A stretch of 64,000 nucleotides of DNA, taken from positions 9,796,001 to 9,860,000 of the forward strand of contig OZ059899.1 in the NCBI GenBank assembly GCA_964057225.1, read 5' to 3'. Below the pieces are notes generated by a model that had not been told where the DNA came from, searched no databases, and saw only the letters and a program-made list of their open reading frames with translations. The stretch comes from Auanema rhodensis (Eukaryota > Animalia > Nematoda). The position numbers were made by a program, and so were the translations under genes. The number at the start of each line of letters is the position of its first letter. The first letter of the stretch is position 1. This document shows, one piece after another, positions 1 to 64,000 of the stretch.

Positions 1-359
1 TCCATAGTTTTTCTCTTAATTTCTCTCATCACAATAGTCTTAGTTTTTTTTCATAAGAATTTCTGGAATCTTAGTTGAACAAGGCAGTATATAATTTTTT
101 CTGGAATTCGAAAGCATTTGGGATGGAAATTAGAAAGAAAAGAACTAGTTTTTCCTACTTTAAAACAAACAATAAGAAATAAAATGAAAAAGATTGTTAG
201 AAATCCAATTTAAACTTATACATTTACTTTGATAAAGAGCCTATTAGTTTGAAATTTTATGTCTCACAGTTCTCCAACAGAACAGACTGATCCTGATTTC
301 TCTATGATTACATAAAACTCTCGTTTGATATACAAAAAGGAGAGGAATAACGTTTCCAG

Positions 360-374
360 GATATCAATGATATC
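360..374. other. 15-bp palindrome GATATCA-A-TGATATC present in nearly every full monomer
   Basis: 7-bp perfect inverted arms around one central base; function unknown. Confidence 0.8.
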
Positions 375-2545
375 GAATCTAGTGTTATTGTAGAAAAATG
401 TAATGTCAGCTCCATAGGTTTTCTCTTAATTTCTCTCATCACAATAGTCTTAGTTTTTTTTCATAAGAGTTGTTGAAATCTTAGTTGAACAAGGCAGTAT
501 ATATTTTTTTCTGGAATTCGAAAGCATTTGGGATGGAAATTAGAAAGAAAAGAACTAGTTTTTCCTACTTTAAAACAAACAATAAGAAATAAAATGAAAA
601 AGATTGTTAGATATCCAATTTAAACTTATACATTTACTTCGATAAAGAGCCTATTAGTTTGAAATTTTATGTCTTACAGTTCTCCAACAGAACAGACTGA
701 TCCTGATTTCTCTATGATTACATAAAACTCTCGTTTGATATACAAAAAGGAGAGGAATAACGTTTCCAGGATATCAATGATATCGAATCTAGTGATATTG
801 TAAAAAAATGTAATGTCAGCTCCATAGTTTTTCTCTTAATTTCTCTCATCACAATAGTCTTAGTTTTTTTTTCATAAGAGTTTCTGAAATCTTAGTTGAA
901 CAAGGCAGTATATATTTTTTTCTGGAATTCGAAAGCATTTGGGATGGAAATTAGAAAGAAAAGAACTAGTTTTTCCTACTTTAAAACAAACAATAAGAAA
1001 TAAAATGAAAAAGATTGTTAGATATCCTATTTAAACTTATACATTTACTTCGATAAAGAGCCTATTAGTTTGAAATTTTATGTCTCACAGTTCTCCAACA
1101 GAACAGACTGATCCTGATTTCTCTATGATTACATAAAACTCTCGTTTGATATACAAAAAGGAGAGGAATAACGTTTCCAGGATATCAATGATATCGAATC
1201 TAGTGATATTGTAGAAAAATGTAATGTCAGCTCCATAGGTTTTCTCTTAATTTCTCTCATCACAATAGTCTTAGTTTTTTTTTCATAAGAGTTGTTGAAA
1301 TCTTAGTTGAACAAGGCAGTATATATTTTTTTCTGGAATTCGAAAGCATTTGGGATGGAAATTAGAAAGAAAAGAACTAGTTTTTCCTACTTTAAAACAA
1401 ACAATAAGAAATAAAATGAAAAAGATTGTTAGATATCCAATTTAAACTTATACATTTACTTCGATAAAGAGCCTATTAGTTTGAAATTTTATGTCTTACA
1501 GTTCTCCAACAGAACAGACTGATCCTGATTTCTCTATGATTACATAAAACTCTCGTTTGATATACAAAAAGGAGAGGAATAACGTTTCCAGGATATCAAT
1601 GATATCGAATCTAGTGATATTGTAGAAAAATGTAATGTCAGCTCCATAGTTTTTCTCTTAATTTCTCTCATCACAATAGTCTTAGTTTTTTTTTCATAAG
1701 AGTTTCTGAAATCTTAGTTGAACAAGGCAGTATATATTTTTTTCTGGAATTCGAAAGCATTTGGGATGGAAATTAGAAAGAAAAGAACTAGTTTTTCCTA
1801 CTTTAAAACAAACAATAAGAAATAAAATGAAAAAGATTGTTAGATATCCAATTTAAACTTATACATTTACTTCTATAAAGAGCCTATTAGTTTGAAATTT
1901 TATGTCTTACAGTTCTCCAACAGAATAGACTGATCCTGATTTCTCTATGATTACATAAAACTCTCGTTTGATATACAAAATAGAGAGGAATAACGTTTCC
2001 AGGATATCAATGATATCAAATCTAGTGATATTGTAGAAAAATGTAATGTCAGCTCCATAGTTTTTCTCTTAATTTCTCTCATCACAATAGTCTTAGTTTT
2101 TTTTCATAAGAGTTTCTGAAATCTTAGTTGAACAAGGCAGTATATATTTTTTTCTGGAATTCGAAAGCATTTGGGATGTAAATTAGAAAGAAAACAACTA
2201 GTTTTTCCTACTTTAAAACAAACAATAAGAAATAAAATGAAAAAGATTGTTAGATATCCAATTTAAACTTATACATTTACTTCGATAAAGAGCCTATTAG
2301 TTTGAAATTTTATGTCTTACAGTTCTCCAACAGAACAGACTGATCCTGATTTCTCTATGATTACATAAAACTCTCGTTTGATATACAAAAAGGAGAGGAA
2401 TAACGTTTCCAGGATATCAATGATATCGAATCTAGTGATATTGTAGAAAAATGTAATGTCAGCTCCATAGTTTTTCTCTTAATTTCTCTCATCACAATAG
2501 TCTTAGTTTTTTTTCATAAGAGTTTCTGAAATCTTAGTTGAACAA

Positions 2546-2618
2546 GGCCGCGTGGCGCAATGGATAACGCGTCTGCCTACGGAGCAGAAGATTGTAGGTT
2601 CGAATCCTGCCGTGGTCG
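2546..2618 (+). tRNA. tRNA-Arg(ACG)
   Basis: 73-nt cloverleaf: acceptor GGCCGCG/CGTGGTC plus discriminator G; anticodon arm TCTGC-CTACGGA-GCAGA; T arm GTAGG-TTCGAAT-CCTGC; A box TGGCGCAATGG; B box GGTTCGAATCC; no CCA. Confidence 0.97.
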
Positions 2619-2622
2619 TAAA

Positions 2623-2629
2623 TTTTTTT
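2623..2629 (+). terminator. RNA polymerase III oligo-T terminator (representative; T6-T8 follows every tRNA copy)
   Basis: GGTCG-TAAA-TTTTTTT; a T-run begins 3-4 nt after the discriminator base. Confidence 0.85.
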
Positions 2630-4090
2630 CATTTCACTTGTCATTTATAAAAATCGAATTTATCTTCTTCAACGATTATTTTTGCAATGTGTCATAAGAA
2701 TTTTATAGTTGAACAAAACGTTTTTTAAGAAGTTTTTTTGTTGTCAACATATATATTTTCCTGGAATTCGAAAGCATTTGGGATGGAAATTAGAAAGAAA
2801 AGAACTAGTTTTTCCTACTTTAAAACAAACAATAAGAAATAAAATGAAAAAGATTGTTAGAAATCCAATTTAAACTTATACATTTACTTTGATAAAGAGC
2901 CTATTAGTTTGAAATTTTATGTCTCACAGTTCTCCAACAGAACAGACTGATCCTGATTTCTCTATGATTACATAAAACTCTCGTTTGATATACAAAAAGG
3001 AGAGGAATAACGTTTCCAGGATATCAATGATATCGAATCTAGTGATATTGTAGAAAAATGTAATATCAGCTCCATAGGTTTTCTCTTAATTTCTCTCATC
3101 ACAATAGTCTTAGTTTTTTTTTCATAAGAGTTTCTGAAATCTTAGTTGAACAAGGCAGTATATATTTTTTTCTGGAATTCGAAAGCATTTGGGATGGAAA
3201 TTAGAAAGAAAAGAACTAGTTTTTCCTACTTTAAAACAAACAATAAGAAATAAAATGAAAAAGATTGTTAGATATCCAATTTAAACTTATACATTTACTT
3301 CGATAAAGAGCCTATTAGTTTGAAATTTTATGTCTTACAGTTCTCCAACAGAACAGACTGATCCTGATTTCTCTATGATTACATAAAACTCTCGTTTGAT
3401 ATACAAAAAGGAGAGGAATAACGTTTCCAGGATATCAATGATATCGAATCTAGTGATATTGTAAAAAAATGTAATGTCAGCTCCATAGGTTTTCTCTTAA
3501 TTTCTCTCATCACAATAGTCTTAGTTTTTTTTCATAAGAGTTGTTGAAATCTTAGTTGAACAAGGCAGTATATATTTTTTTCTGGAATTCGAAAGCATTT
3601 GGGATGGAAATTAGAAAGAAAAGAACTAGTTTTTCCTACTTTAAAACAAACAATAAGAAATAAAATGAAAAAGATTGTTAGATATCCAATTTAAACTTAT
3701 ACATTTACTTCGATAAAGAGCCTATTAGTTTGAAATTTTATGTCTTACAGTTCTCCAACAGAACAGACTGATCCTGATTTCTCTATGATTACATAAAACT
3801 CTCGTTTGATATACAAAAAGGAGAGGAATAACGTTTCCAGGATATCAATGATATCGAATCTAGTGATATTGTAGAAAAATGTAATGTCAGCTCCATAGTT
3901 TTTCTCTTAATTTCTCTCATCACAATAGTCTTAGTTTTTTTTTCATAAGAGTTTCTGAAATCTTAGTTGAACAAGGCAGTATATATTTTTTACTGGAATT
4001 CGAAAGCATTTGGGATGGAAATTAGAAAGAAAAGAACTAGTTTTTCCTACTTTAAAACAAACAATAAGAAATAAAATGAAAAAGATTGTT

Positions 4091-4335
4091 AGATATCCTA
4101 TTTAAACTTATACATTTACTTCGATAAAGAGCCTATTAGTTTGAAATTTTATGTCTTACAGTTCTCCAACAGAACAGACTGATCCTGATTGCTCTATGAT
4201 TACATAAAACTCTCGTTTGATATAAAAGCATATTGGATAGAAATTTCGAAAGCATTTTGGATGGAAATTAGAACGAAAAGAACTAGTTTTTTCTATTTTA
4301 AAACAAACAATAATAAACAAAATGAAAAGATTGTT
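4091..4335. repeat. Truncated about 245-bp monomer variant (junctions near 4224, 6933, 10248, 13153, 59954)
   Basis: GTTTGATATA joins AAAGCATATTGGAT(A/C)GAAATTTCGAAAGCATTTTGG, skipping the second half of the monomer. Confidence 0.92.
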
Positions 4336-7300
4336 AGATATCCAATTTAAACTTATACATTTACTTCGATAAAGAGCCTATTAGTTTGAAATTTTATGTC
4401 TTACAGTTCTCCAACAGAACAGACTGATCCTGATTTCTCTATGATTACATAAAACTCTCGTTTGATATACAAAAAGGAGAGGAATAACGTTTCCAGGATA
4501 TCAATGATATCGAATCTAGTGATATTGTAGAAAAATGTAATGTCAGCTCCATAGTTTTTCTCTTAATTTCTCTCATCACAATAGTCTTAGTTTTTTTTTC
4601 ATAAGAGTTTCTGAAATCTTAGTTGAACAAGGCAGTATATATTTTTTTCTGGAATTCGAAAGCATTTGGGATGGAAATTAGAAAGAAAAGAACTAGTTTT
4701 TCCTACTTTAAAACAAACAATAAGAAATAAAATGAAAAAGATTGTTAGATATCCTATTTAAACTTATACATTTACTTCGATAAAGAGCCTATTAGTTTGA
4801 AATTTTATGTCTCACAGTTCTCCAACAGAACAGACTGATCCTGATTTCTCTATGATTACATAAAACTCTCGTTTGATATACAAAAAGGAGAGGAATAACG
4901 TTTCCAGGATATCAATGATATCGAATCTAGTGATATTGTAGAAAAATGTAATGTCAGCTCCATAGGTTTTCTCTTAATTTCTCTCATCACAATAGTCTTA
5001 GTTTTTTTTTCATAAGAGTTGTTGAAATCTTAGTTGAACAAGGCAGTATATATTTTTTTCTGGAATTCGAAAGCATTTGGGATGGAAATTAGAAAGAAAA
5101 GAACTAGTTTTTCCTACTTTAAAACAAACAATAAGAAATAAAATGAAAAAGATTGTTAGATATCCAATTTAAACTTATACATTTACTTCGATAAAGAGCC
5201 TATTAGTTTGAAATTTTATGTCTTACAGTTCTCCAACAGAACAGACTGATCCTGATTTCTCTATGATTACATAAAACTCTCGTTTGATATACAAAAAGGA
5301 GAGGAATAACGTTTCCAGGATATCAATGATATCGAATCTAGTGATATTGTAGAAAAATGTAATGTCAGCTCCATAGTTTTTCTCTTAATTTCTCTCATCA
5401 CAATAGTCTTAGTTTTTTTTTCATAAGAGTTTCTGAAATCTTAGTTGAACAAGGCAGTATATATTTTTTTCTGGAATTCGAGAGCATTTGGGATGGAAAT
5501 TAGAAAGAAAAGAACTAGTTTTTCCTACTTTAAAACAAACAATAAGAAATAAAATGAAAAAGATTGTTAGATATCCAATTTAAACTTATACATTTACTTC
5601 GATAAAGAGCCTATTAGTTTGAAATTTTATGTCTTACAGTTCTCCAACAGAACAGACTGATCCTGATTTCTCTATGATTACATAAAACTCTTGTTTGATA
5701 TACAAAAAGAAGAGAAATAACGTTTCCAGGATATCAATGATATCGAATCTAGTGATATTGTAGAAAAATGTAATGTCAGCTCCATAGTTTTTCTCTTAAT
5801 TTCTCTCATCACAATAGTCTTAGTTTTTTTTCATAAGAGTTTCTGAAATCTTAGTTGAACAAGGCAGTATATATTTTTTTCTGGAATTCGAAAGCATTTG
5901 GGATGGAAATTAGAAAAAAAAGAACTGGTTTTTCCTACTTTAAAACAAACAATAAGAAATAAAATGAAAAAGATTGTTAGATATCCAATTTAAACTTATA
6001 CATTTACTTCGATAAAGAGCCTATTAGTTTGAAATTTTATGTCTTACAGTTCTCCAACAGAACAGACTGATCCTGATTTCTCTATGATTACATAAAACTC
6101 CCGTTTGATATACAAAATAGAGAGGAATAACGTTTCCAGGATATCAATGATATCGAATCTAGTGATATTGTGGAAAAATGTAATGTCAGCTCCATAGTTT
6201 TTCTCTTAATTTCTCTCATCACAATAGTCTTAGTTTTTTTTTCATAAGAGTTTCTGAAATCTTAGTTGAACAAGGCAGTATATATTTTTTTCTGGAATTC
6301 GAAAGCATTTGGGATGGAAATCAGAAAGAAAAGAACTAGTTTTTCCTACTTTAAAACAAACAATAAGAAATAAAATGAAAAAGATTGTTAGATATCCAAT
6401 TTAAACTTATACATTTACTTTGATAAAGAGCCTATTAGTTTGAAATTTTATGTCTTACAGTTCTCCAACAGAACAGACTGATCCTGATTTCTCTATGATT
6501 ACATAAAACTCTCGTTTGATATACAAAACGGAGAGGAATAACGTTTCCAGGATATCAATGATATCGAATCTAGTGATATTGTAGAAAAATGTAATGTCAG
6601 CTCCATAGTTTTTCTCTTAATTTCTCTCATCACAATAGTCTTAGTTTTTTTTCATAAGAGTTTCTGAAATCTTAGTTGAACAAGGCAGTATATATTTTTT
6701 TCTGGAATTCGAAAGCATTTGGGATGGAAATTAGAAAGAAAAGAACTAGTTTTTCCTACTTTAAAACAAACAATAAGAAATAAAATGAAAAAGATTGTTA
6801 GATATCCTATTTAAACTTATACATTTACTTCGATAAAGAGCCTATTAGTTTGAAATTTTATGTCTTACAGTTCTCCAACAGAACAGACTGATCCTGATTG
6901 CTCTATGATTACATAAAACTCTCGTTTGATATAAAAGCATATTGGATAGAAATTTCGAAAGCATTTTGGATGGAAATTAGAACGAAAAGAACTAGTTTTT
7001 TCTATTTTAAAACAAACAATAATAAACAAAATGAAAAGATTGTTAGATATCCAATTTAAACTTATACATTTACTTCGATAAAGAGCCTATTAGTTTGAAA
7101 TTTTATGTCTTACAGTTCTCCAACAGAACAGACTGATCCTGATTTCTCTATGATTACATAAAACTCTCGTTTGATATACAAAAAGGAGAGGAATAACGTT
7201 TCCAGGATATCAATGATATCGAATCTAGTGATATTGTAGAAAAATGTAATGTCAGCTCCATAGTTTTTCTCTTAATTTCTCTCATCACAATAGTCTTAGT

Positions 7301-8159
7301 TTTTTTTTCATAAGAGTTTCTGAAATCTTAGTTGAACAAGGCAGTATATATTTTTTTCTGGAATTCGAAAGCATTTGGGATGGAAATTAGAAAGAAAAGA
7401 ACTAGTTTTTCCTACTTTAAAACAAACAATAAGAAATAAAATGAAAAAGATTGTTAGATATCCAATTTAAACTTATACATTTACTTCGATAAAGAGCCTA
7501 TTAGTTTGAAATTTTATGTCTTACAGTTCTCCAACAGAATAGACTGATCCTGATTTCTCTATGATTACATAAAACTCTCGTTTGATATACAAAATAGAGA
7601 GGAATAACGTTTCCAGGATATCAATGATATCAAATCTAGTGATATTGTAGAAAAATGTAATGTCAGCTCCATAGTTTTTCTCTTAATTTCTCTCATCACA
7701 ATAGTCTTAGTTTTTTTTCATAAGAGTTTCTGAAATCTTAGTTGAACAAGGCAGTATATATTTTTTTCTGGAATTCGAAAGCATTTGGGATGTAAATTAG
7801 AAAGAAAACAACTAGTTTTTCCTACTTTAAAACAAACAATAAGAAATAAAATGAAAAAGATTGTTAGATATCCAATTTAAACTTATACATTTACTTCGAT
7901 AAAGAGCCTATTAGTTTGAAATTTTATGTCTTACAGTTCTCCAACAGAACAGACTGATCCTGATTTCTCTATGATTACATAAAACTCTCGTTTGATATAC
8001 AAAAAGGAGAGGAATAACGTTTCCAGGATATCAATGATATCGAATCTAGTGATATTGTAGAAAAATGTAATGTCAGCTCCATAGTTTTTCTCTTAATTTC
8101 TCTCATCACAATAGTCTTAGTTTTTTTTCATAAGAGTTTCTGAAATCTTTGTTGAACAA

Positions 8160-8232
8160 GGCCGCGTGGCGCAATGGATAACGCGTCTGCCTACGGAGCA
8201 GAAGATTGTAGGTTCGAATCCTGCCGTGGTCG
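8160..8232 (+). tRNA. tRNA-Arg(ACG)
   Basis: Identical to the copy at 2546. Confidence 0.97.
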
Positions 8233-11200
8233 TAAATTTTTTTCATTTCACTTGTCATTTATAAAAATCGAATTTATCTTCTTCAACGATTATTTTTGCA
8301 ATGTGTCATAAGAATTTTATAGTTGAACAAAACGTTTTTTAAGAAGTTTTTTTGTTGTCAACATATATATTTTCCTGGAATTCGAAAGCATTTGGGATGG
8401 AAATTAGAAAGAAAAGAACTAGTTTTTCCTACTTTAAAACAAACAATAAGAAATAAAATGAAAAAGATTGTTAGATATCCAATTTAAACTTATACATTTA
8501 CTTCGATAAAGAGCCTATTAGTTTGAAATTTTATGTCTTACAGTTCTCCAACAGAACAGACTGATCCTGATTTCTCTATGATTACATAAAACTCTCGTTT
8601 GATATACAAAAAGGAGAGGAATAACGTTTCCAGGATATCAATGATATCGAATCTAGTGATATTGTAGAAAAATGTAATGTCAGCTCCATAGTTTTTCTCT
8701 TAATTTCTCTCATCACAATAGTCTTAGTTTTTTTTTCATAAGAGTTTCTGAAATCTTAGTTGAACAAGGCAGTATATATTTTTTTCTGGAATTCGAGAGC
8801 ATTTGGGATGGAAATTAGAAAGAAAAGAACTAGTTTTTCCTACTTTAAAACAAACAATAAGAAATAAAATGAAAAAGATTGTTAGATATCCAATTTAAAC
8901 TTATACATTTACTTCGATAAAGAGCCTATTAGTTTGAAATTTTATGTCTTACAGTTCTCCAACAGAACAGACTGATCCTGATTTCTCTATGATTACATAA
9001 AACTCTTGTTTGATATACAAAAAGAAGAGAAATAACGTTTCCAGGATATCAATGATATCGAATCTAGTGATATTGTAGAAAAATGTAATGTCAGCTCCAT
9101 AGTTTTTCTCTTAATTTCTCTCATCACAATAGTCTTAGTTTTTTTTCATAAGAGTTTCTGAAATCTTAGTTGAACAAGGCAGTATATATTTTTTTCTGGA
9201 ATTCGAAAGCATTTGGGATGGAAATTAGAAAAAAAAGAACTGGTTTTTCCTACTTTAAAACAAACAATAAGAAATAAAATGAAAAAGATTGTTAGATATC
9301 CAATTTAAACTTATACATTTACTTCGATAAAGAGCCTATTAGTTTGAAATTTTATGTCTTACAGTTCTCCAACAGAACAGACTGATCCTGATTTCTCTAT
9401 GATTACATAAAACTCCCGTTTGATATACAAAATAGAGAGGAATAACGTTTCCAGGATATCAATGATATCGAATCTAGTGATATTGTGGAAAAATGTAATG
9501 TCAGCTCCATAGTTTTTCTCTTAATTTCTCTCATCACAATAGTCTTAGTTTTTTTTTCATAAGAGTTTCTGAAATCTTAGTTGAACAAGGCAGTATATAT
9601 TTTTTTCTGGAATTCGAAAGCATTTGGGATGGAAATCAGAAAGAAAAGAACTAGTTTTTCCTACTTTAAAACAAACAATAAGAAATAAAATGAAAAAGAT
9701 TGTTAGATATCCAATTTAAACTTATACATTTACTTTGATAAAGAGCCTATTAGTTTGAAATTTTATGTCTTACAGTTCTCCAACAGAACAGACTGATCCT
9801 GATTTCTCTATGATTACATAAAACTCTCGTTTGATATACAAAACGGAGAGGAATAACGTTTCCAGGATATCAATGATATCGAATCTAGTGATATTGTAGA
9901 AAAATGTAATGTCAGCTCCATAGTTTTTCTCTTAATTTCTCTCATCACAATAGTCTTAGTTTTTTTTCATAAGAGTTTCTGAAATCTTAGTTGAACAAGG
10001 CAGTATATATTTTTTTCTGGAATTCGAAAGCATTTGGGATGGAAATTAGAAAGAAAAGAACTAGTTTTTCCTACTTTAAAACAAACAATAAGAAATAAAA
10101 TGAAAAAGATTGTTAGATATCCTATTTAAACTTATACATTTACTTCGATAAAGAGCCTATTAGTTTGAAATTTTATGTCTTACAGTTCTCCAACAGAACA
10201 GACTGATCCTGATTGCTCTATGATTACATAAAACTCTCGTTTGATATAAAAGCATATTGGATAGAAATTTCGAAAGCATTTTGGATGGAAATTAGAACGA
10301 AAAGAACTAGTTTTTTCTATTTTAAAACAAACAATAATAAACAAAATGAAAAGATTGTTAGATATCCAATTTAAACTTATACATTTACTTCGATAAAGAG
10401 CCTATTAGTTTGAAATTTTATGTCTTACAGTTCTCCAACAGAACAGACTGATCCTGATTTCTCTATGATTACATAAAACTCTCGTTTGATATACAAAAAG
10501 GAGAGGAATAACGTTTCCAGGATATCAATGATATCGAATCTAGTGATATTGTAGAAAAATGTAATGTCAGCTCCATAGTTTTTCTCTTAATTTCTCTCAT
10601 CACAATAGTCTTAGTTTTTTTTTCATAAGAGTTTCTGAAATCTTAGTTGAACAAGGCAGTATATATTTTTTTCTGGAATTCGAAAGCATTTGGGATGGAA
10701 ATTAGAAAGAAAAGAACTAGTTTTTCCTACTTTAAAACAAACAATAAGAAATAAAATGAAAAAGATTGTTAGATATCCAATTTAAACTTATACATTTACT
10801 TCGATAAAGAGCCTATTAGTTTGAAATTTTATGTCTTACAGTTCTCCAACAGAATAGACTGATCCTGATTTCTCTATGATTACATAAAACTCTCGTTTGA
10901 TATACAAAATAGAGAGGAATAACGTTTCCAGGATATCAATGATATCAAATCTAGTGATATTGTAGAAAAATGTAATGTCAGCTCCATAGTTTTTCTCTTA
11001 ATTTCTCTCATCACAATAGTCTTAGTTTTTTTTCATAAGAGTTTCTGAAATCTTAGTTGAACAAGGCAGTATATATTTTTTTCTGGAATTCGAAAGCATT
11101 TGGGATGTAAATTAGAAAGAAAACAACTAGTTTTTCCTACTTTAAAACAAACAATAAGAAATAAAATGAAAAAGATTGTTAGATATCCAATTTAAACTTA

Positions 11201-11474
11201 TACATTTACTTCGATAAAGAGCCTATTAGTTTGAAATTTTATGTCTTACAGTTCTCCAACAGAACAGACTGATCCTGATTTCTCTATGATTACATAAAAC
11301 TCTCGTTTGATATACAAAAAGGAGAGGAATAACGTTTCCAGGATATCAATGATATCGAATCTAGTGATATTGTAGAAAAATGTAATGTCAGCTCCATAGT
11401 TTTTCTCTTAATTTCTCTCATCACAATAGTCTTAGTTTTTTTTCATAAGAGTTTCTGAAATCTTTGTTGAACAA

Positions 11475-51939: not shown

Positions 51940-53294
51940 TAATTTTTTTTCATTTCACTTGTCATTTATAAAAATCGAATTTATCTTCTTCAACGATTTG
52001 TTTTGCAATGTGTCATAAGAATTTCATAGTTGAACAAAACGTTCTTTAAGAAGTTTTTTTGTTGTCAACATATATATTTTCCTGGAATTCGAAAGCATTT
52101 GGGATGGAAATTAGAAAGAAAAGAACTAGTTTTTTCTACTTTAAAACAAACAATAAGAAATAAAATGAAAAAGATTGTTAGATATCCAATTTAAACTTAT
52201 ACATTTACTTCGATAAAGAGCCTATTAGTTTGAAATTTTATGTCTTACAGTTCTCCAACAGAACAGACTGATCCTGATTTCTCTATGATTACATAAAACT
52301 CTCGTTTGATATACAAAAAGGAGAGGAATAACGTTTCCAGGATATCAATGATATCGAATCTAGTGATATTGTAGAAAAATGTAATGTCAGCTCCATAGTT
52401 TTTCTCTTAATTTCTCTCATCACAATAGTCTTAGTTTTTTTTCATAAGAGTTTCTGAAATCTTAGTTGAACAAGGCAGTATATATTTTTTTCTGGTATTC
52501 GAAAGCATTTGGGATGGAAATTAGAAAAAAAAGAACTAGTTTTTCCTACTTTAAAACAAACAATAAGAAATAAAATGAAAAAGATTGTTAGATATCCAAT
52601 TTAAACTTATACATTTACTTCGATAAAGAGCCTATTAGTTTGAAATTTTATGTCTTACAGTTCTCCAACAGAACAGACTGATCCTGATTTCTCTATGATT
52701 ACATAAAACTCTCGTTTGATATACAAAATAGAGAGGAATAACGTTTCCAGGATATCAATGATATCGAATCTAGTGATATTGTGGAAAAATGTAATGTCAG
52801 CTCCATAGTTTTTCTCTTAATTTCTCTCATCACAATAGTCTTAGTTTTTATTTCATAAGAGTTTCTGAAATCTTAGTTGAACAAGGCAGTATATATTTTT
52901 TTCTGGAATTCGAAAGCATTTGGGATGGAAATTAGAAAGAAAAGAACTAGTTTTTCCTACTTTAAAACAAACAATAAGAAATAAAATGAAAAAGATTGTT
53001 AGATATCCAATTTAAACTTATACATTTTCTTCGATAAAGAGCCTATTAGTTTGAAATTTTATGTCTTACAGTTCTCCAACAGAACAGACTGATCCTGATT
53101 TCTCTATGATTACATAAAACTCTCGTTTGATATACAAAAAGGAGAGGAATAACGCTTCCAGGATATCAATGATATCGAATCTAGTGATATTGTAGAAAAA
53201 TGTAATGTCAGCTCCATAGTTTTTCTCTTAATTTCTCTCATCACAATAGTCTTAGTTTTTTTTCATAAGAGTTTCTGAAATCTTAGTTGAACAA

Positions 53295-53367
53295 GGCCGC
53301 GTGGCGCAATGGATAACGCGTCTGCCTACGGAGCAGAAGATTGTAGGTTCGAATCCTGCCGTGGTCG
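53295..53367 (+). tRNA. tRNA-Arg(ACG)
   Basis: Identical to the copy at 2546. Confidence 0.97.
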
Positions 53368-56300
53368 TAAATTTTTTTCATTTCACTTGTCATTTATAAA
53401 AATCGAATTTATCTTCTTCAACGATTATTTTTGCAATGTGTCATAAGAATTTCATAGTTGAACAAAACGTTTTTTAAGAAGTTTTTTTGTTGTCAACATA
53501 TATATTTTCCTGGAATTCGAAAGCATTTGGGAACAGACTGATCCTGATTTCTCTATGATTACATAAAACTCTCGTTTGATATACAAAATAGAGAGGAATA
53601 ACGTTTCCAGGATATCAATGATATCGAATCTAGTGATATTGTAGAAAAATGTAATGTCAGCTCCATAGTTTTTCTCTTAATTTCTCTCATCACAATAGTC
53701 TTAGTTTTTTTTCATAAGAGTTTCTGAAATCTTAGTTGAACAAGGCAGTATATATTTTTTTCTGGAATTCGAAAGCATTTGGGATGGAAATTAGAAAGAA
53801 AAGAACTAGTTTTTCCTACTTTAAAACAAACAATAAGAAATAAAATGAAAAAGATTGTTAGATATCCAATTTAAACTTATACATTTACTTCGATAAAGAG
53901 CCTATTAGTTTGAAATTTTATGTCTTACAGTTCTCCAACAGAACAGACTGATCCTGATTTCTCTATGATTACATAAAACTCTCGTTTGATATACAAAATA
54001 GAGAGGAATAACGTTTCCAGGATATCAATGATATCGAATCTAGTGATATTGTAGAAAAATGTAATGTCAGCTCCATAGTTTTTCTCTTAATTTCTCTCAT
54101 CACAATAGTCTTAGTTTTTTTTCATAAGAGTTTCTGAAATCTTAATTGAACAAGGCAGTATATATTTTTTTCTGGAATTCGAAAGCATTTGGGATGGAAA
54201 TTAGAAAAAAAAGAACTAGTTTTTCCTACTTTAAAACAAACAATAAGAAATAAAATGAAAAAGATTGTTAGATATCCAATTTAAACTTATACATTTACTT
54301 CGATAAAGAGCCTATTAGTTTGAAATTTTATGTCTTACAGTTCTCCAACAGAACAGACTGATCCTGATTTCTCTATGATTACATAAAACTCTCGTTTGAT
54401 ATACAAAATAGAGAGGAATAACGTTTCCAGGATATCAATGATATCGAATCTAGTGATATTGTAGAAAAATGTAATGTCAGCTCCATAGTTTTTCTCTTAA
54501 TTTCTCTCATCACAATAGTCTTAGTTTTTTTTCATAAGAGTTTCTGAAATCTTAGTTGAACAAGGCAGTATATATTTTTTTCTGGAATTCGAAAGCATTT
54601 GGGATGGAAATTAGAAAGAAAAGAACTAGTTTTTCCTACTTTAAAACAAACAATAAGAAATAAAATGAAAAAGATTGTTAGATATCCAATTTAAACTTAT
54701 ACATTTTCTTCGATAAAGAGCCTATTAGTTTGAAATTTTATGTCTTACAGTTCTCCAACAGAACAGACTGATCCTGATTTCTCTATGATTACATAAAACT
54801 CTCGTTTGATATACAAAAAGGAGAGGAATAACGTTTCCAGGATATCAATGATATCGAATCTAGTGATGTTGTAGAAAAATGTAATGTCAGCTCCATAGTT
54901 TTTCTCTTAATTTCTCTCATCACAATAGTCTTAGTTTTTTTTCATAAGAGTTTCTGAAATCTTAGTTGAACAAGGCAGTATATATTTTTTTCTGGAATTC
55001 GAAAGCATTTGGGATGGAAATTAGAAAGAAAAGAACTAGTTTTTCCTACTTTAAAACAAACAATAAGAAATAAAATGAAAAAGATTGTTAGATATCCAAT
55101 TTAAACTTATACATTTACTTCGATAAAGAGCCTATTAGTTTGAAATTTTATGTCTTACAGTTCTCCAACAGAACAGACTGATCCTGATTTCTCTATGATT
55201 ACATAAAACTCTCGTTTGATATACAAAAAGGAGAGGAATAACGTTTCCAGGATATCAATGATATCGAATCTAGTGATATTGTAGAAAAATGTAATGTCAG
55301 CTCCATAGTTTTTCTCTTAATTTCTCTCATCACAATAGTCTTAGTTTTTTTTCATAAGAGTTTCTGAAATCTTAGTTGAACAAGGCAGTATATATTTTTT
55401 TCTGGAATTCGAAAGCATTTGGGATGGAAATTAGAAAGAAAAGAACTAGTTTTTCCTACTTTAAAACAAACAATAAGAAATAAAATGAAAAAGATTATTA
55501 GATATCCAATTTAAACTTATACATTTACTTCGATAAAGAGCCTATTAGTTTGAAATTTTATGTCTTACAGTTCTCCAACAGAACAGACTGATCCTGATTT
55601 CTCTATGATTACATAAAACTCTCGTTTGATATACAAAATAGAGAGGAATAACGTTTCCAGGATATCAATGATATGGAATCTAGTGATATTGTAGAAAAAT
55701 GTAATGTCAGCTCCATAGTTTTTCTCTTAATTTCTCTCATCACAATAGTCTTAGTTTTTTTTCATAAGAGTTTCTGAAATCTTAATTGAACAAGGCAGTA
55801 TATATTTTTTTCTGGAATTCGAAAGCATTTGGGATGGAAATTAGAAAAAAAAGAACTAGTTTTTCCTACTTTAAAACAAACAATAAGAAATAAAATGAAA
55901 AAGATTGTTAGATATCCAATTTAAACTTATACATTTACTTCGATAAAGAGCCTATTAGTTTGAAATTTTATGTCTTACAGTTCTCCAACAGAACAGACTG
56001 ATCCTGATTTCTCTATGATTACATAAAACTCTCGTTTGATATACAAAATAGAGAGGAATAACGTTTCCAGGATATCAATGATATCGAATCTAGTGATATT
56101 GTAGAAAAATGTAATGTCAGCTCCATAGTTTTTCTCTTAATTTCTCTCATCACAATAGTCTTAGTTTTTTTTCATAAGAGTTTCTGAAATCTTAGTTGAA
56201 CAAGGCAGTATATATTTTTTTCTGGAATTCGAAAGCATTTGGGATGGAAATTAGAAAGAAAAGAACTAGTTTTTCCTACTTTAAAACAAACAATAAGAAA

Positions 56301-57023
56301 TAAAATGAAAAAGATTGTTAGATATCCAATTTAAACTTATACATTTTCTTCGATAAAGAGCCTATTAGTTTGAAATATTATGTCTTACAGTTCTCCAACA
56401 GAACAGACTGATCCTGATTTCTCTATGATTACATAAAACTCTCGTTTGATATACAAAAAGGAGAGGAATAACGTTTCCAGGATATCAATGATATCGAATC
56501 TAGTGATGTTGTAGAAAAATGTAATGTCAGCTCCATAGTTTTTCTCTTAATTTCTCTCATCACAATAGTCTTAGTTTTTTTTCATAAGAGTTTCTGAAAT
56601 CTTAGTTGAACAAGGCAGTATATATTTTTTTCTGGAATTCGAAAGCATTTGGGATGGAAATTAGAAAGAAAAGAACTAGTTTTTCCTACTTTAAAACAAA
56701 CAATAAGAAATAAAATGAAAAAGATTGTTAGATATCCAATTTAAACTTATACATTTTCTTCGATAAAGAGCCTATTAGTTTGAAATTTTATGTCTTACAG
56801 TTCTCCAACAGAACAGACTGATCCTGATTTCTCTATGATTACATAAAACTCTCGTTTGATATACAAAAAGGAGAGGAATAACGTTTCCAGGATATCAATG
56901 ATATCGAATCTAGTGATATTGTAGAAAAATGTAATGTCAGCTCCATAGTTTTTCTCTTAATTTCTCTCATCACAATAGTCTTAGTTTTTTTTCATAAGAG
57001 TTTCTGAAATCTTAGTTGAACAA

Positions 57024-57096
57024 GGCCGCGTGGCGCAATGGATAACGCGTCTGCCTACGGAGCAGAAGATTGTAGGTTCGAATCCTGCCGTGGTCG
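57024..57096 (+). tRNA. tRNA-Arg(ACG)
   Basis: Identical to the copy at 2546. Confidence 0.97.
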
Positions 57097-57882
57097 TAAA
57101 TTTTTTTCATTTCACTTGTCATTTATAAAAATCAAATTCATCTTCTTCAACGATTATTTTTGCAATGTGTCATAAGAATTTCATAGTTGAACAAAACGTT
57201 TTTTAAGAAGTTTTTTTGTTGTCAACATATATATTTTCCTGGAATTCGAAAGCATTTGGGAACAGACTGATCCTGATTTCTCTATGATTACATAAAACTC
57301 TCGTTTGATATACAAAATAGAGAGGAATAACGTTTCCAGGATATCAATGATATCGAATCTAGTGATATTGTAGAAAAATGTAATGTCAGCTCCATAGTTT
57401 TTCTCTTAATTTCTCTCATCACAATAGTCTTAGTTTTTTTTCATAAGAGTTTCTGAAATCTTAGTTGAACAAGGCAGTATATATTTTTTTCTGGAATTCG
57501 AAAGCATTTGGGATGGAAATTAGAAAGAAAAGAACTAGTTTTTCCTACTTTAAAACAAACAATAAGAAATAAAATGAAAAAGATTGTTAGATATCCAATT
57601 TAAACTTATACATTTACTTCGATAAAGAGCCTATTAGTTTGAAATTTTATGTCTTACAGTTCTCCAACAGAACAGACTGATCCTGATTTCTCTATGATTA
57701 CATAAAACTCTCGTTTGATATACAAAAAGGAGAGGAATAACGTTTCCAGGATATCAATGATATCGAATCTAGTGATATTGTAGAAAAATGTAATGTCAGC
57801 TCCATAGTTTTTCTCTTAATTTCTCTCATCACAATAGTCTTAGTTTTTTTTCATAAGAGTTTCTGAAATCTTAGTTGAACAA

Positions 57883-57955
57883 GGCCGCGTGGCGCAATGG
57901 ATAACGCGTCTGCCTACGGAGCAGAAGATTGTAGGTTCGAATCCTGCCGTGGTCG
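57883..57955 (+). tRNA. tRNA-Arg(ACG)
   Basis: Identical to the copy at 2546. Confidence 0.97.
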
Positions 57956-58900
57956 TAATTTTTTTTCATTTCACTTGTCATTTATAAAAATCGAATTTAT
58001 CTTCTTCAACGATTTGTTTTGCAATGTGTCATAAGAATTTCATAGTTGAACAAAACGTTCTTTAAGAAGTTTTTTTGTTGTCAACATATATATTTTCCTG
58101 GAATTCGAAAGCATTTGGGATGGAAATTAGAAAGAAAAGAACTAGTTTTTTCTACTTTAAAACAAACAATAAGAAATAAAATGAAAAAGATTGTTAGATA
58201 TCCAATTTAAACTTATACATTTACTTCGATAAAGAGCCTATTAGTTTGAAATTTTATGTCTTACAGTTCTCCAACAGAACAGACTGATCCTGATTTCTCT
58301 ATGATTACATAAAACTCTCGTTTGATATACAAAATAGAGAGGAATAACGTTTCCAGGATATCAATGATATCGAATCTAGTGATATTGTGGAAAAATGTAA
58401 TGTCAGCTCCATAGTTTTTCTCTTAATTTCTCTCATCACAATAGTCTTAGTTTTTTTTTCATAAGAGTTTCTGAAATCTTAGTTGAACAAGGCAGTATAT
58501 ATTTTTTTCTGGAATTCGAAAGCATTTGGGATGGAAATTAGAAAGAAAAGAACTAGTTTTTCCTACTTTAAAACAAACAATAAGAAATAAAATGAAAAAG
58601 ATTGTTAGATATCCAATTTAAACTTATACATTTACTTCGATAAAGAGCCTATTAGTTTGAAATTTTATGTCTTACAGTTCTCCAACAGAACAGACTGATC
58701 CTGATTTCTCTATGATTACATAAAACTCTCGTTTGATATACGAAATAGAGAGGAATAACGTTTCCAGGATATCAATGATATCGAATCTAGTGATATTGTG
58801 GAAAAATGTAATGTCAGCTCCATAGTTTTTCTCTTAATTTCTCTCATCACAATAGTCTTAGTTTTTTTTCATAAGAGTTTCTGAAATCTTAGTTGAACAA

Positions 58901-58973
58901 GGCCGCGTGGAGCAATGGATAACGCGTCTGCCTACGGAGCAGAAGATTGTAGGTTCGAATCCTGCCGTGGTCG
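58901..58973 (+). tRNA. tRNA-Arg(ACG), C11A variant (possibly impaired)
   Basis: Reads GGCCGCGTGGAGCAATGG; C>A at 58911 breaks the D-stem C11-G24 pair and alters the A box. Confidence 0.85.
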
Positions 58974-59507
58974 TAAATTTTTTTCTTTTCACTTGTCATT
59001 TATAAAAATCGAATTTATCTTCTTCAACGATTTGTTTTGCAATGTGTCATAAGAATTTCATAGTTGAACAAAACGTTTTTTAAGAAGTTTTTTTGTTGTC
59101 AACATATATATTTTCCTGGAATTCGAAAGCATTTGGGATGGAAATTAGAAAGAAAAGAATTAGTTTTTCCTACTTTAAAACAAACAATAAGAAATAAAAT
59201 GAAAAAGATTGTTAGATATCCAATTTAAACTTATACATTTACTTCGATAAAGAGCCTATTAGTTTGAAATTTTATGTCTTACAGTTCTCCAACAGAACAG
59301 ACTGATCCTGATTTCTCTATGATTACATAAAACTCTCGTTTGATATACAAAAAGGAGAGGAATAACGTTTCCAGGATATCAATGATATCGAATCTAGTGA
59401 TATTGTAGAAAAATGTAATGTCAGCTCCATAGTTTTTCTCTTAATTTCTCTCATCACAATAGTCTTAGTTTTTTTTCATAAGAGTTTCTGAAATCTTAGT
59501 TGAACAA

Positions 59508-59580
59508 GGCCGCGTGGCGCAATGGATAACGCGTCTGCCTACGGAGCAGAAGATTGTAGGTTCGAATCCTGCCGTGGTCG
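59508..59580 (+). tRNA. tRNA-Arg(ACG)
   Basis: Identical to the copy at 2546. Confidence 0.97.
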
Positions 59581-60360
59581 TAAATTTTTTTCATTTCACT
59601 TGTCATTTATAAAAATCGAATTTATCTTCTTCAACGATTATTTTTGCAATGTGTCATAAGAATTTCATAGTTGAACAGAACGTTTTTTAAGAAGTTTTTT
59701 TGTTGTCAACATATATATTTTCCTGGAATTCGAAAGCATTTGGGATGGAAATTAGAAAGGAAAGAACTAGTTTTTCCTACTTTAAAACAAACAATAAAAA
59801 ATAAAATGAAAAAGATTGTTAGATATCCAATTTAAACTTATACATTTACTTCGATAAACAGCCTATTAGTTTGAAATTTTATGTCTTACAGTTCTCCAAC
59901 AGAACAGACTGATCCTGATTTCTCTATGATTACATAAAACTCTCGTTTGATATAAAAGCATATTGGATCGAAATTTCGAAAGCATTTTGGATGAAAATTA
60001 GAAAGAAAAGAATTAGTTTTTCCTACTTTAAAACAAACAATAAGAAATAATATGAAAAAGATTGTTAGATATCCAATTTAAACTTATACATTTACTTCGA
60101 TAAAGAGCCTATTAGTTTGAAATTTCATGTCTTACAGTTCTCCAACAGAACAGACTAATCCTGATTTCTCTATGATTACATAAAACTCTCGTTTGATATA
60201 CAAAAAGGAGAGGAATAACGTTTCCAGGATATCAATGATATCGAATCTAGTGATATTGTAGAAAAATGTAATGTCAGCTCCATAGTTTTTCTCTTAATTT
60301 CTCTCATCACAATAGTCTTAGTTTTTTTTCATAAGAGTTTCTGAAATCTTAGTTGAACAA

Positions 60361-60433
60361 GGCCGCGTGGCGCAATGGATAACGCGTCTGCCTACGGAGC
60401 AGAAGATTGTAGGTTCGAATCCTGCCGTGGTCG
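60361..60433 (+). tRNA. tRNA-Arg(ACG)
   Basis: Identical to the copy at 2546. Confidence 0.97.
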
Positions 60434-63018
60434 TAAATTTTTTTCATTTCACTTGTCATTTATAAAAATCGAATTTATCTTCTTCAACGATTATTTTTGC
60501 AATGTGTCATAAGAATTTCATAGTTGAACAAAACGTTTTTTAAGAAGTTTTTTTGTTGTCAACATATATATTTTCCTGGAATTCGAAAGCATTTGGGATG
60601 GAAATTAGAAAGAAAAGAACTAGTTTTTTCTACTTTAAAACAAACAATAAGAAATAAAATGAAAAAGATTGTTAGATATCCAATTTAAACTTATACATTT
60701 ACTTCGATAAAGAGCCTATTAGTTTGAAATTTTATGTCTTACAGTTCTCCAACAGAACAGACTGATCCTGATTTCTCTATGATTACATAAAACTCTCGTT
60801 TGATATACAAAATAGAGAGGAATAACGTTTCCAGGATATCAATGATATCGAATCTAGTGATATTGTAGAAAAATGTAATGTCAGCTCCATAGTTTTTCTC
60901 TTAATTTCTCTCATCACAATAGTCTTAGTTTTTTTTCATAAGAGTTTCTGAAATCTTAGTTGAACAAGGCATTATATATTTTTTTCTGGAATTCGAAAGC
61001 ATTTGGGATGGAAATTAGAAAGAAAAGAACTAGTTTTTCCTACTTTAAAACAAACAATAAGAAATAAATTGAAAAAGATTGTTAGATATCCAATTTAAAC
61101 TTATACATTTACTTCGATAAAGAGCCTATTAGTTTGAAATTTTATGTCTTACAGTTCTCCAACAGAACAGACTGATCCTGATTTCTCTATGATTACATAA
61201 AACTCTCGTTTGATATACAAAAAGGAGAGGAATAACGTTTCCAGGATATCAATGATATCGAATCTATTGATATTGTAGAAAAATGTAATGTCAGCTCCAT
61301 AGTTTTTCTCTTAATTTCTCTCATCACAATAGTCTCAGTTTTTTTTCATAAGAGTTTCTGAAATCTTAGTTGAACAAGGCAGTATATATTTTTTTCTGGA
61401 ATTCGAAAGCATTTGGGATGGAAATTAGAAAGAAAAGAACTAGTTTTTCCTACTTTAAAACAAACAATAAGAAATAAAATGAAAAAGATTGTTAGATATC
61501 CAATTTAAACTTATACATTTACTTCGATAAAGAGCCTATTAGTTTGAAATTTTATGTCTTACAGTTCTCCAACAGAACAGACTGATCCTGATTTCTCTAT
61601 GATTACATAAAACTCTCGTTTGATATACAAAAAGGAGAGGAATAACGTTTCCAGGATATCAATGATATCGAATCTAGTGATATTGTAGAAAAATGTAATG
61701 TCAGCTCCATAGTTTTTCTCTTAATTTCTCTCATCACAATAGTCTTAGTTTTTTTTCATAAGAGTTTCTGAAATCTTAGTTGAACAAGGCAGTATATATT
61801 TTTTTCTGGAATTCGAAAGCATTTGGGATGGAAATTAGAAAGAAAAGAACTAGTTTTTCCTACTTTAAAACAAACAATAAGAAATAAAATGAAAAAGATT
61901 GTTAGATATCCTATTTAAACTTATACATTTACTTCGATAAAGAGCCTATTAGTTTGAAATTTTATGTCTTACAGTTCACCAACAGAACAGACTGATCCTG
62001 ATTTCTCTATGATTACATAAAACTCTCGTTTGATATACAAAATAGAGAGGAATAACGTTTCCAGGATATCAATGATATCGAATCTAGTGATATTGTGGAA
62101 AAATGTAATGTCAGCTCCATAGTTTTTCTTTTAATTTCTCTCATCACAATAGTCTTAGTTTTTTTTTCATAAGAGTTTCTGAAATCTTAGTTGAACAAGG
62201 CAGTATATATTTTTTTCTAGAATTCGAAAGCATTTGGGATGGAAATTAGAAAGAAAAGAACTAATTTTTCTTACTTTAAAACAAACAATAAGAAATAAAA
62301 TGAAAAAGATTGTTAGATATCCAATTTAAACTTATACATTTACTTCGATGAAGAGCCTATTAGTTTGAAATTTTATGTCTTACAGTTCTCCAACAGAACA
62401 GACTGATCCTGATTTCTCTATGATTACATAAAACTCTCGTTTGATATACAAAAAGGAGAGGAATAACGTTTCCAGGATATCAATGATATCGAATCTAGTG
62501 ATATTGTAGAAAAATGTAATGTCAGCTCCATAGTTTTTCTCTTAATTTCTCTCATCACAATAGTCTTAGTTTTTTTTCATGAGAGTTTCTGAAATCTTAG
62601 TTGAACAAGGCAGTATATATTTTTTTCTGGAATTCGAAAGCATTTAGGATGGAAATTAGAAAGAAAAGAACTAGTTTTTCCTACTTTAAAACAAACAATA
62701 AGAAATAAAATGAAAAAGATTGTTAGATATCCAATTTAAACTTATACATTTACTTCGATAAAGAGCCTATTAGTTTGAAATTTTATGTCTTACAGTTCTC
62801 CAGCAGAACAGACTGATCCTGATTTCTCTATGATTTCATAAAACTCTCGTTTGATATACAAAAAGGAGAGGAATAACGTTTCCAGGACATCAATGATATC
62901 GAATCTAGTGATATTGTAGAAAAATGTAATGTCAGCTCCATAGTTTTTCTCTTAATTTCTCTCATCACAATAGTCTTAGTTTTTTTTCATAAGAGTTTCT
63001 GAAATCTTAGTTGAACAA

Positions 63019-63091
63019 GGCCGCGTGGCGCAATGGATAACGCGTCTGCCTACGGAGCAGAAGATTGTAGGTTCGAATCCTGCCGTGGTCG
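63019..63091 (+). tRNA. tRNA-Arg(ACG)
   Basis: Identical to the copy at 2546. Confidence 0.97.
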
Positions 63092-63625
63092 TAAATTTTT
63101 TTCATTTCACTTGTCATTTATAAAAATCGAATTTATCTTCTTCAACGATTTGTTTTGCAATGTGTCATATGAATTTCATATTTGAACAAAACGTTTTTTA
63201 AGAAGTTTTTTTGTTGTCAACATATATATTTTCCTGGAATTCGAAAGCATTTGGGATGGAAATTAGAAAGAAAAGAACTAGTTTTTCCTACTTTAAAACA
63301 AACAATAAGAAATAAAATGAAAAAGATTGTTAGATATCCAATTTAAACTTATACATTTACTTCGATAAAGAGCCTATTAGTTTGAAATTTTATGTCTTAC
63401 AGTTCTCCAGCAGAACAGACTGATCCTGATTTCTCTATGATTTCATAAAACTCTCGTTTGATATACAAAAAGGAGAGGAATAACGTTTCCAGGACATCAA
63501 TGATATCGAATCTAGTGATATTGTAGAAAAATGTAATGTCAGCTCCATAGTTTTTCTCTTAATTTCTCTCATCACAATAGTCTTAGTTTTTTTTCATAAG
63601 AGTTTCTGAAATCTTAGTTGAACAA

Positions 63626-63698
63626 GGCCGCGTGGCGCAATGGATAACGCGTCTGCCTACGGAGCAGAAGATTGTAGGTTCGAATCCTGCCGTGGTCG
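63626..63698 (+). tRNA. tRNA-Arg(ACG)
   Basis: Identical to the copy at 2546. Confidence 0.97.
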
Positions 63699-64000
63699 TA
63701 AATTTTTTTCATTTCACTTGTCATTTATAAAAATCGAATTTATCTTCTTCAACGATTTGTTTTGCAATGTGTCATAAGAATTTCATATTTGAACAAAACG
63801 TTTTTTAAGAAGTTTTTTTGTTGTCAACATATATATTTTCCTGGAATTCGAAAGCATTTGGGATGGAAATTAGAAAGAAAAGAACTAGTTTTTCCTACTT
63901 TAAAACAAACAATAAGAAATAAAATGAAAAAGATTGTTAGATATCCAATTTAAACTTATACATTTACTTCGATAAAGAGCCTATTAGTTTGAAATTTTAT

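Follow-up and report, generated by a model that had tools for sequence, protein, structure and literature searches.

The window, the whole 64,000-nucleotide stretch analysed here (1..64000, forward strand), is occupied by one head-to-tail array, with a single orientation throughout and an A+T content of 71%. A repeat period of 410-411 bp runs across its entire length (TRF), and delimiting the units by the anchor motif TTAGTTGAACAAGGC gave 145 junctions, that is, 144 complete units with a partial unit at each end. These units belong to five classes. Gene-less units of 409-411 bp, hereafter 'empty', number 118, and 14 'filled' units of 606-608 bp carry a tRNA-Arg(ACG) gene followed by a 124-nt trailer. 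Seven units of 449 bp are filled units that lack 158 bp of body, four units of 656 bp are empty units with a 246-bp internal duplication, and the single unit of 853 bp adds that duplication to a filled unit. The original prediction of a mixed array of filled and empty units was right about both unit lengths, but five unit classes and higher-order repeats are present rather than two classes. It had also put the excess of empty units at about fivefold, close to the 122 empty and 23 tRNA-bearing junctions counted here (about 5.3:1).

A block composed purely of gene-less units separates two mixed blocks (Table 1). Higher-order repeats were found at lags of 3315, 4375 and 8929 bp, with blocks at least 99.5% identical, as against 98.7% identity between the 118 monomers of 410 bp. 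The lags of 3315 and 8929 bp belong to multi-unit blocks of the left mixed block; the 4375-bp repeat of the right mixed block consists of ten units (449, three of 410, 449, 410, 607 and three of 410 bp). In its length, its non-coding monomer repeated head to tail, its concerted evolution and its higher-order repeats, this array agrees with satellite DNA.

Table 1. Features of the array (positions in the window)
Feature	Coordinates	Strand	Description
Left mixed block	1..13173	+	Empty units, three filled units and four 656-bp units; tRNAs at 2546, 8160 and 11475
Representative 656-bp unit	3963..4618	+	246-bp duplication joined through a 20-nt filler
Pure gene-less block	13174..35734	+	About 55 units of 410-411 bp; matches 98%
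Right mixed block	35720..64000	+	20 of the 23 tRNA genes; 4375-bp higher-order repeat
Representative 449-bp unit	44177..44625	+	158-bp body deletion shows 2-nt (GA) microhomology
Representative empty unit	44626..45035	+	410 bp; footprint GGCAG at 44638-44642, then TATATA and a T7 run
tRNA 5' flank (upstream element copy 1)	45016..45047	+	Same in filled and empty units
Representative filled unit	45036..45642	+	607 bp
tRNA-Arg(ACG)	45048..45120	+	73 nt; A box at bases 8-18, B box GGTTCGAATCC
Putative deleted segment	45053..45251	+	199 bp, from tRNA base 6 to the A preceding the TATATA run
Trailer	45121..45244	+	124 nt, filled units only; T7-T8 Pol III terminator at its start, T7GTT at its end
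Diverged second copy of the tRNA 5' flank	45194..45218	+	Lies in the trailer; matches at 24 of 25 bases, two gaps
Variant tRNA copy (only one)	58901..58973	+	C11 to A; D stem and A box affected
Sole 853-bp unit	59496..60348	+

ARAGORN detects 23 tRNA-Arg(ACG) genes in the window, all on the forward strand, and 22 of the 23 are identical. The six copies located between 38000 and 46000 score 58.3 bits against the Rfam family, whose gathering score is 29. A run of six to eight T residues, a Pol III terminator, opens 3-4 nt 3' of every copy, and each gene contains what we take, by comparison with the textbook consensus, to be its A and B boxes. The array is thus also a tandem tRNA array, with intact genes placed head to tail in one orientation and provided with internal promoter boxes and a terminator. 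The tRNA is better conserved than its trailer, with 1 variable site in 73 against 13 in 124 (Fisher p = 0.019, the 23 copies being non-independent since they are copies within higher-order repeats). Judging from these features, the remaining tRNA genes look functional and constrained, and the empty units, having neither an A nor a B box, should escape Pol III transcription. The score of the second flank copy found inside the trailer is reached by 18 of 3000 dinucleotide shuffles (p ~0.006). Read directly, the junction sequences have neither a target-site duplication nor poly(A) at the insert ends, and CCA does not follow base 73, all as had been claimed; the position of the insert within the tandem unit is constant. 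On these grounds we rejected a tRNA-derived SINE or a retroposed tRNA copy.

The filled and empty units share a body of about 385 bp as well as the tRNA 5' flank, which argues for their common descent. Over the first 40 nt, 110 of the 122 empty-type junctions are identical and the other 12 are one base off, in line with the single common junction and rare point changes described initially; the junction strings quoted then and the 197-bp difference in length between filled and empty units were also correct. In all 122 cases, GGCAG or a one-base variant of it sits exactly at the position where the tRNA starts. Taken alone, this junction permits several alignments, for instance of its GGC against the GTC at the insert end, and retention of exactly the first three tRNA bases, as proposed at first, is one of them. 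Retention of five bases, with a C to A change at base 4, fits the contig evidence better.

This evidence comes from a second empty junction, not present in the window, in which GGCCG is joined to TATATATTTTCC or a close variant. We found it in contigs of runs X1 (organism A), X4 (organism B) and X5 (organism C); it is known only from short Logan contigs. Here, the first five tRNA bases are joined cleanly to the right flank of the filled unit itself, skipping 198-199 bases (45053-45251, or 45053-45250 with one extra T). Runs X1 and X5 show joints from 45052 to 45251/45252, and X1 and X4 show loose ends. The GGCCG junction carries a variant 5' flank, with TAGGTG rather than TAGTTG. Since the window junction GGCAG is GGCCG with one substitution, the order suggested is from filled unit to clean deletion to the empty unit of the window. 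The clean-deletion product itself is absent from the window, whose junction would be its mutated descendant, and the single junction shared by the empty units of the window suggests that they all descend from one event.

Does the rest of the unit tell which class is older? Over the body, the consensus sequences of the two classes show no fixed differences, and rare body variants are common to adjacent units of different class (62597-63006, empty, and 63007-63613, filled, are an example). The comparison of monomers over their shared 400 bp or so, proposed at the outset as a way of ordering the classes, is defeated by this, as body variants pass freely between classes and between neighbours. The body is therefore silent on which class is older, and only the sequence beside the junction is informative. 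There, 5 of 22 nt differ between classes, with no recombinants. Outside the roughly 20 bp immediately right of the indel, the only class difference left is one linked T-run allele about 30-40 bp upstream, where filled junctions have T8 only and empty junctions T8 or T9.

We consider it likely that a unit of about 607 bp carrying a gene gave rise, by deletion and subsequent spread, to the gene-less satellite. The original unit would have comprised the 5' flank, an intact Pol III tRNA-Arg(ACG) gene, its T-run terminator, the 124-nt trailer and the body (about 385 bp). One deletion, some 199 bp long, would then have taken out tRNA bases 6-73, the terminator and the trailer, leaving as its footprint the 5' flank and the first five tRNA bases. 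The gene-less unit may have spread through unequal crossing-over and duplication of multi-unit blocks, acquiring on the way the C to A footprint change and a lengthened T run, until it made up the approximately 85% of units that it represents today. Exchange between units would hold the bodies of both classes identical; the sequence adjoining the indel cannot be homogenised in this manner, and class-specific differences would be kept there. The founding deletion of the original prediction thus survives, both as the origin of the empty unit and as a single event, but with other limits: about 199 bp from tRNA base 6, instead of 197 bp after base 3. Had the deletion arisen because the two flank copies recombined, a unit of about 442 bp would be expected, and none of the unit lengths has this value. 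We also looked for a decayed second tRNA, either after the internal flank copy or at the start of the body (where the B-box-like GGAATTCGAA lies), and obtained alignment scores at or below shuffle means.

Could the 410-bp satellite have come first, with a tRNA-Arg gene and its trailer captured into one unit that was later amplified locally? Capture may have proceeded through microhomology at GGC or GGCCG, or a tRNA locus may have recombined ectopically with the array. Organisms B, C and D do have dispersed, differently flanked tRNA-Arg(ACG) copies, which diverge from the array unit just 5' of the tRNA and directly 3' of the terminator, and one alignment has the insert beginning exactly at tRNA base 1 and ending in a T run. 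Insertion would also suit the majority of empty units wherever sampled and the fact that the upstream variants at filled junctions form a subset of those at empty ones. However, the empty site must then already have held the five G/C bases that start the tRNA, in place and in A+T-rich DNA. Given the composition, the chance of GGCCG at one fixed site is 6e-5 (0.0019 for at least four matches in five), which argues against insertion. The second copy of the 5' flank in the trailer is a further difficulty: the flank itself lies outside the insert, and such a copy is natural if flank and trailer share a history. No donor locus with the tRNA and trailer behind a different 5' flank was seen among the contig loose ends and pieces searched, and the insert ends bear none of the marks of retroposition listed above. 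We thus regard insertion as unlikely.

The deletion would appear to be old. Empty junctions and the filled trailer occur in organisms A, B and C, and the junction of the 246-bp duplication is present too among the contigs of these organisms (the runs specified being X4 and X5). Thousands of contigs match the stretch, and summed word depths, which are not copy numbers, are very high in the A, B and C runs. The ratio of trailer to body depth is 0.20 in A, 0.11 in B and 0.15 in C, and the filled share in the window is 0.16. With both kinds of junction and similar ratios in all three organisms, the mixture looks long-lived rather than transitional, and the initial view of an array caught midway between gene array and satellite is doubtful. 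If A, B and C are very closely related, as may be the case, their sharing of these features may represent little time. No purely gene-bearing genome or locus was found anywhere sampled, and an ancestral pure gene array is the presumed starting point of the deletion history. In metagenomes, an 18-mer of the empty junction gave 23 single hits; the body motif accompanies none of these, which we therefore take for chance matches.

If the 410-bp body encoded another small RNA or a regulatory element, the array could be kept for that product and the tRNA would be an optional passenger. Each body does contain a weak Y RNA-like match ending at a T8-T9 run, and the bodies are highly homogeneous (98.7%). 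However, this match, at 20-26 bits, falls short of the gathering score of 38, the lower stem that defines Y RNAs is unpaired, its fold does not surpass that of shuffled sequence (z = -0.78), and homogeneity is already expected from concerted evolution alone. No Rfam family exceeded its threshold within the body. The body was absent from the RNA runs; where an RNA run matched at all, the match covered 0.08 of the words, roughly what the tRNA by itself would give. We rejected a Y RNA-like gene, and also protein coding, since the body has no open reading frame of at least 50 amino acids; a selected product of the body is, in our opinion, very improbable. Hardly more credible is an assembly artefact, in which a long-read assembler would have interleaved or inflated separate pure filled and empty arrays, or fewer copies, making the interspersion and higher-order repeats unreal: near-identical multi-kb blocks are typical of assembler errors and short contigs say nothing firm on which units adjoin, but the filled and the empty junction, the joint of the 246-bp duplication and a similar filled share (0.11-0.20) recur independently in short-read contigs of three organism labels, and the units follow regular higher-order repeats with private variants, not random mixing.

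The novelty suggested for such an array by the original prediction was too generous, since animal tRNA arrays, a maize tRNA satellite and satellites derived from 5S rDNA have already been published. The nematode Nippostrongylus brasiliensis has massive tandem tRNA repeats, with 147 copies of tRNA-Trp and 90 of tRNA-Ser (Eccles et al., bioRxiv 10.1101/187054). Like ours, these are satellite-scale head-to-tail arrays of a single tRNA gene with a lineage-specific spacer, known from a long-read assembly. However, every unit there is described as a gene plus spacer and is about 150-200 bp long, where ours measure 410 and 607 bp, and the report has no gene-less derivative units among the gene units; in our array, the gene is missing at 122 of 145 junctions. 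Tandem arrays of ncRNA and tRNA genes in Hydractinia and Nematostella (bioRxiv 10.1101/2023.08.25.554815) have roughly even spacing and are described without a deletion footprint or satellite offshoot, while spacing is uneven here because the 'spacer' is formed of 0 to more than 50 copies of the deleted unit. The long tandem tRNA arrays of Entamoeba (Tawari et al. 2008, PMC2652664) also occupy a sizeable share of the genome, with copies far above translational need. Entamoeba is, however, a protist, its units hold one to five tRNA genes with microsatellite-like spacers, and its authors see no clear evidence of non-functional copies, whereas about 85% of units are gene-less in our array.

Closer in outcome are the satellites derived from 5S rDNA, such as PcP190 in frogs, 5SHindIII in Hoplias and that of the Plantago B chromosome (PMC4201667, PMC11675491, PMC12692304), where a Pol III gene array likewise yields a non-coding satellite that expands. 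In these, much of the gene is still recognisable (about 120 bp in PcP190), and they are described as separate satellite families. Here, the part of the gene that survives is far shorter, five bases (GGCCG in contigs, GGCAG in the window) beside the 5' flank, and gene-bearing and gene-less units are interleaved and homogenised together in one array. Plant satellites whose name or presumed ancestry points to a tRNA gene include tRNASAT_ZM of maize, a 92-kb array on chromosome 4L (PMC10335936), and the satellite of Benslimane et al. 1986, as cited in PMC4411372. In the sources consulted, the tRNA origin is deduced from residual similarity, and we found no account of an array in which intact genes stand beside a clean deletion product and the descendant of that product.

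The birth of a satellite usually has to be pieced together afterwards from faint similarity. In the present case, all stages are available as sequence, from the unit with its gene intact, through the clean deletion product, to the mutated, amplified descendant, two of the three lying adjacent in one array. Concerted evolution has wiped out the history of this array everywhere except in the short tract to the right of the indel and the linked T-run allele upstream, which is a warning for trees built from monomers. One may go further and suppose that Pol III gene arrays routinely seed the major satellites of this genome through internal deletions that spare the 5' flank together with a short stub from the 5' end of the gene, and that a mix of some 10-20% genes and 80-90% stubs is held at a set ratio across related species. 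We offer this as a conjecture of low probability; a set ratio would follow if the whole array has a chromosomal role, in the spacing of active Pol III genes, as a boundary or heterochromatin, or in a centromere-like function in a possibly holocentric animal. The array also provides a concrete system in which to ask up to what copy number selection protects an over-amplified tRNA gene, and strengthens the emerging picture of some animals having their small-RNA genes in arrays of satellite scale.

The entire 64-kb window is a single tandem array in one orientation, with 71% A+T. Cutting it at the conserved motif immediately upstream of the tRNA yielded 145 junctions, that is, points where the tRNA begins or, in gene-less ('empty') units, would begin, and 144 complete units. 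The original prediction was right about the unit sequences, the difference of 197 bp in length and the approximate 5:1 ratio of empty to tRNA-bearing ('filled') units, but its two-class picture overlooked the 449-, 656- and 853-bp classes as well as the arrangement in higher-order repeats. Stretches of 4.8-6.2 kb recur at distances of 3315, 4375 and 8929 bp with 99.5% identity or more, against 98.7% for random empty monomers, which argues for recent growth of the array by duplication of multi-unit blocks.

Unit classes, blocks and other features of the array
Feature	Coordinates	Number	Description
Empty units		118	409-411 bp, without gene
Filled units		14	606-608 bp, tRNA and 124-nt trailer
449-bp units	44177-44625; others at 39195, 42498, 46873, 48552, 53283, 57012	7	tRNA-bearing, 158-bp deletion in body
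656-bp units	3963-4618, 6672-7327, 9987-10642, 12892-13547	4	empty unit with 246-bp internal duplication
853-bp unit	59496-60348	1	filled unit with the 246-bp duplication of the 656-bp units
Left mixed block	1-13173		three tRNAs
Pure empty block	13174-35734		~55 empty units
Right block	35720-64000		20 tRNAs; ten-unit higher-order repeat, 4375 bp
Y RNA-like Rfam match	43242-43335 and equivalent place in each body		20-26 bits, gathering score 38; ends at T8-T9 run

ARAGORN detected 23 tRNA-Arg(ACG) genes of 73 nt in the whole window, all on the + strand, and the six copies in the stretch scanned with Rfam scored 58.3 bits (gathering score 29). The sequence is identical in 22 of the 23 copies; the remaining one (58901-58973) carries a C11 to A change that would disrupt a base pair of the D stem and change the A box, and is likely a first step toward a pseudogene. 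By the textbook consensus, the A box corresponds to bases 8-18, and GGTTCGAATCC fits the B box perfectly. Every copy is followed, 3-4 nt past base 73, by a T run, of only six residues for the copy at 35732 (35798-35814, in a 606-bp unit) and T7 or T8 elsewhere. We found no encoded CCA, poly(A) or target-site duplication at the tRNA or insert ends in the window; the copies are genes rather than retrocopies. One of 73 sites varies among copies in the tRNA versus 13 of 124 in the trailer (Fisher p = 0.019, indicative only since copies are non-independent), a contrast consistent with purifying selection on the tRNA. In sequencing run X5, from an organism coded C, depth at the tRNA (window 45046-45129) exceeds that of the trailer and of the body (the ~385 bp common to empty and filled units), and several different flanks are seen. 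Organism C seems to have many more tRNA-Arg(ACG) copies outside the satellite, possibly in another array.

How do the two junction types coexist? The classes are distinguished by five of the 22 nt to the right of the junction; over the following ~385 bp they show no fixed difference. No recombinants occur at these five sites, which lie within ~20 bp right of the indel. Rare body variants recur in neighbouring units of the two classes, such as 62597-63006 and 63007-63613. Unequal exchange with breakpoints within the body would move bodies between junction types, and this shuffling would explain their identical consensus. A T8/T9 length polymorphism ~30-40 nt upstream of every junction (for example, 45006-45015) accounts for the alternation of 410 and 411 bp; the T8 form precedes all 23 filled junctions and 66 empty ones, and the T9 form precedes 50 empty ones. 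Class-specific differences persist only beside the indel, at the right-hand sites and the upstream T-run allele. For this reason, ancestry cannot be read off a monomer tree built on the shared 400 bp.

The window sequence by itself is ambiguous on whether the filled or the empty unit is older; in the MAFFT alignment the gap opens immediately after TTGAACAA, and GGCAGT of the empty unit is paired with GTCAAC at the insert end. We compared Logan contigs from four runs (organisms A to D) with a rotated filled unit (44836-45445). Contigs of A, B and C contain body, trailer and window-type empty junction alike, together with a second empty junction, found nowhere in the window, in which GGCCG (45048-45052) is followed straight away by the TATATATTTTCC that starts at 45252 or by a closely similar sequence. 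It was seen as joints 45052 to 45251/45252 in X1 (organism A) and X5, loose contig ends agreeing with it occur in X1 and X4 (organism B), and its depth in X5 is 1678 versus 813 for the window-type junction. Built solely of filled-unit sequence, namely the first five tRNA bases and the filled-type right flank, it would result directly from a clean 199-bp deletion. The window junction (GGCAG, then TATATA and T7C) differs from it by C to A at base 4, one C to T and a T run two bases longer, and unit length is accounted for exactly (607 - 199 + 2 = 410). Since the window junction is a mutated form of the GGCCG junction, the filled unit would have come first, deletion of 45053-45251 would have created the GGCCG junction, and the two substitutions and two extra T would have led to the window's empty unit. 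The empty unit thus probably arose by deletion from the filled unit, as originally predicted; a single founding deletion is supported, but the breakpoint probably lies after tRNA base 5, not base 3, with base 4 changed later.

A less likely alternative is that the tRNA and trailer were inserted into a pre-existing empty unit. This would require a chance GGCCG match exactly at the gene start, with a probability of 6e-5 at one given site for this base composition (0.0019 for at least four of five matches). In organisms B, C and D there are dispersed tRNA-Arg copies whose similarity to the unit stops immediately before base 1 and immediately past the terminator, and no donor with tRNA and trailer behind other flanks was seen in contigs of the four runs. 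The insert is also tied to its surroundings by a diverged second copy of the tRNA 5' flank, present in the trailer of every filled unit 73 nt past the tRNA (45194-45218; 24 of 25 bases match, with two gaps), whose score was reached by 18 of 3000 dinucleotide shuffles. Recombination between the two flank copies was rejected as the origin of the empty unit, its expected ~442-bp product being absent among unit lengths. The repeated flank does indicate that the 5' flank outside the insert and the trailer have a common older history. The trailer copy may be left over from an older tRNA repeat of shorter period; no tRNA remnant follows it.

The variant classes have histories of their own. The 158-bp body deletion shows a 2-nt GA microhomology and is confined to tRNA-bearing units in the window; it travels with the 4375-bp higher-order repeat. 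The 246-bp duplication is shared by empty and filled units, its joint being a 20-nt filler resembling the body start. As B and C contigs contain its junction too, it is either old or was exchanged between classes. The trailer-to-body ratio of summed contig word depths, which are not copy numbers, is ~0.20 in A, 0.11 in B and 0.15 in C, organisms that may be very close relatives, versus 0.16 for window units. These similar ratios and the shared duplication junction speak against an array 'caught midway' from gene array to satellite: the mixture is probably not a fleeting transitional state.

A Y RNA-like gene in each body was rejected: the match scores under the gathering threshold, the defining stem is missing and the fold is no better than that of shuffled sequences, and we judged it a chance match. 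There was no ORF of at least 50 amino acids, none of the RNA runs contained body sequence, a decayed tRNA in the body was not supported, and a metagenome scan returned only chance matches.

Massive single-tRNA arrays are known in the nematode Nippostrongylus brasiliensis (10.1101/187054), and tRNA arrays were published for Hydractinia and Nematostella (10.1101/2023.08.25.554815). In Entamoeba arrays no non-functional copies were seen (PMC2652664), whereas the present array has 118 gene-less units of 409-411 bp and four of 656 bp. A satellite array of tRNA type is on record for maize (PMC10335936), and descent of plant satellites from a tRNA was proposed in 1986 (cited in PMC4411372); satellites derived from 5S rDNA have also been published (PMC4201667, PMC12692304). 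Within our incomplete coverage of the literature, we found no account of intact gene units interleaved and co-homogenised with a deletion derivative whose primary product is recoverable. The mixed gene-bearing and gene-less array is a real feature. While tRNA arrays and gene-derived satellites were already known, the interleaving of gene and deletion units in one array appears to be new.
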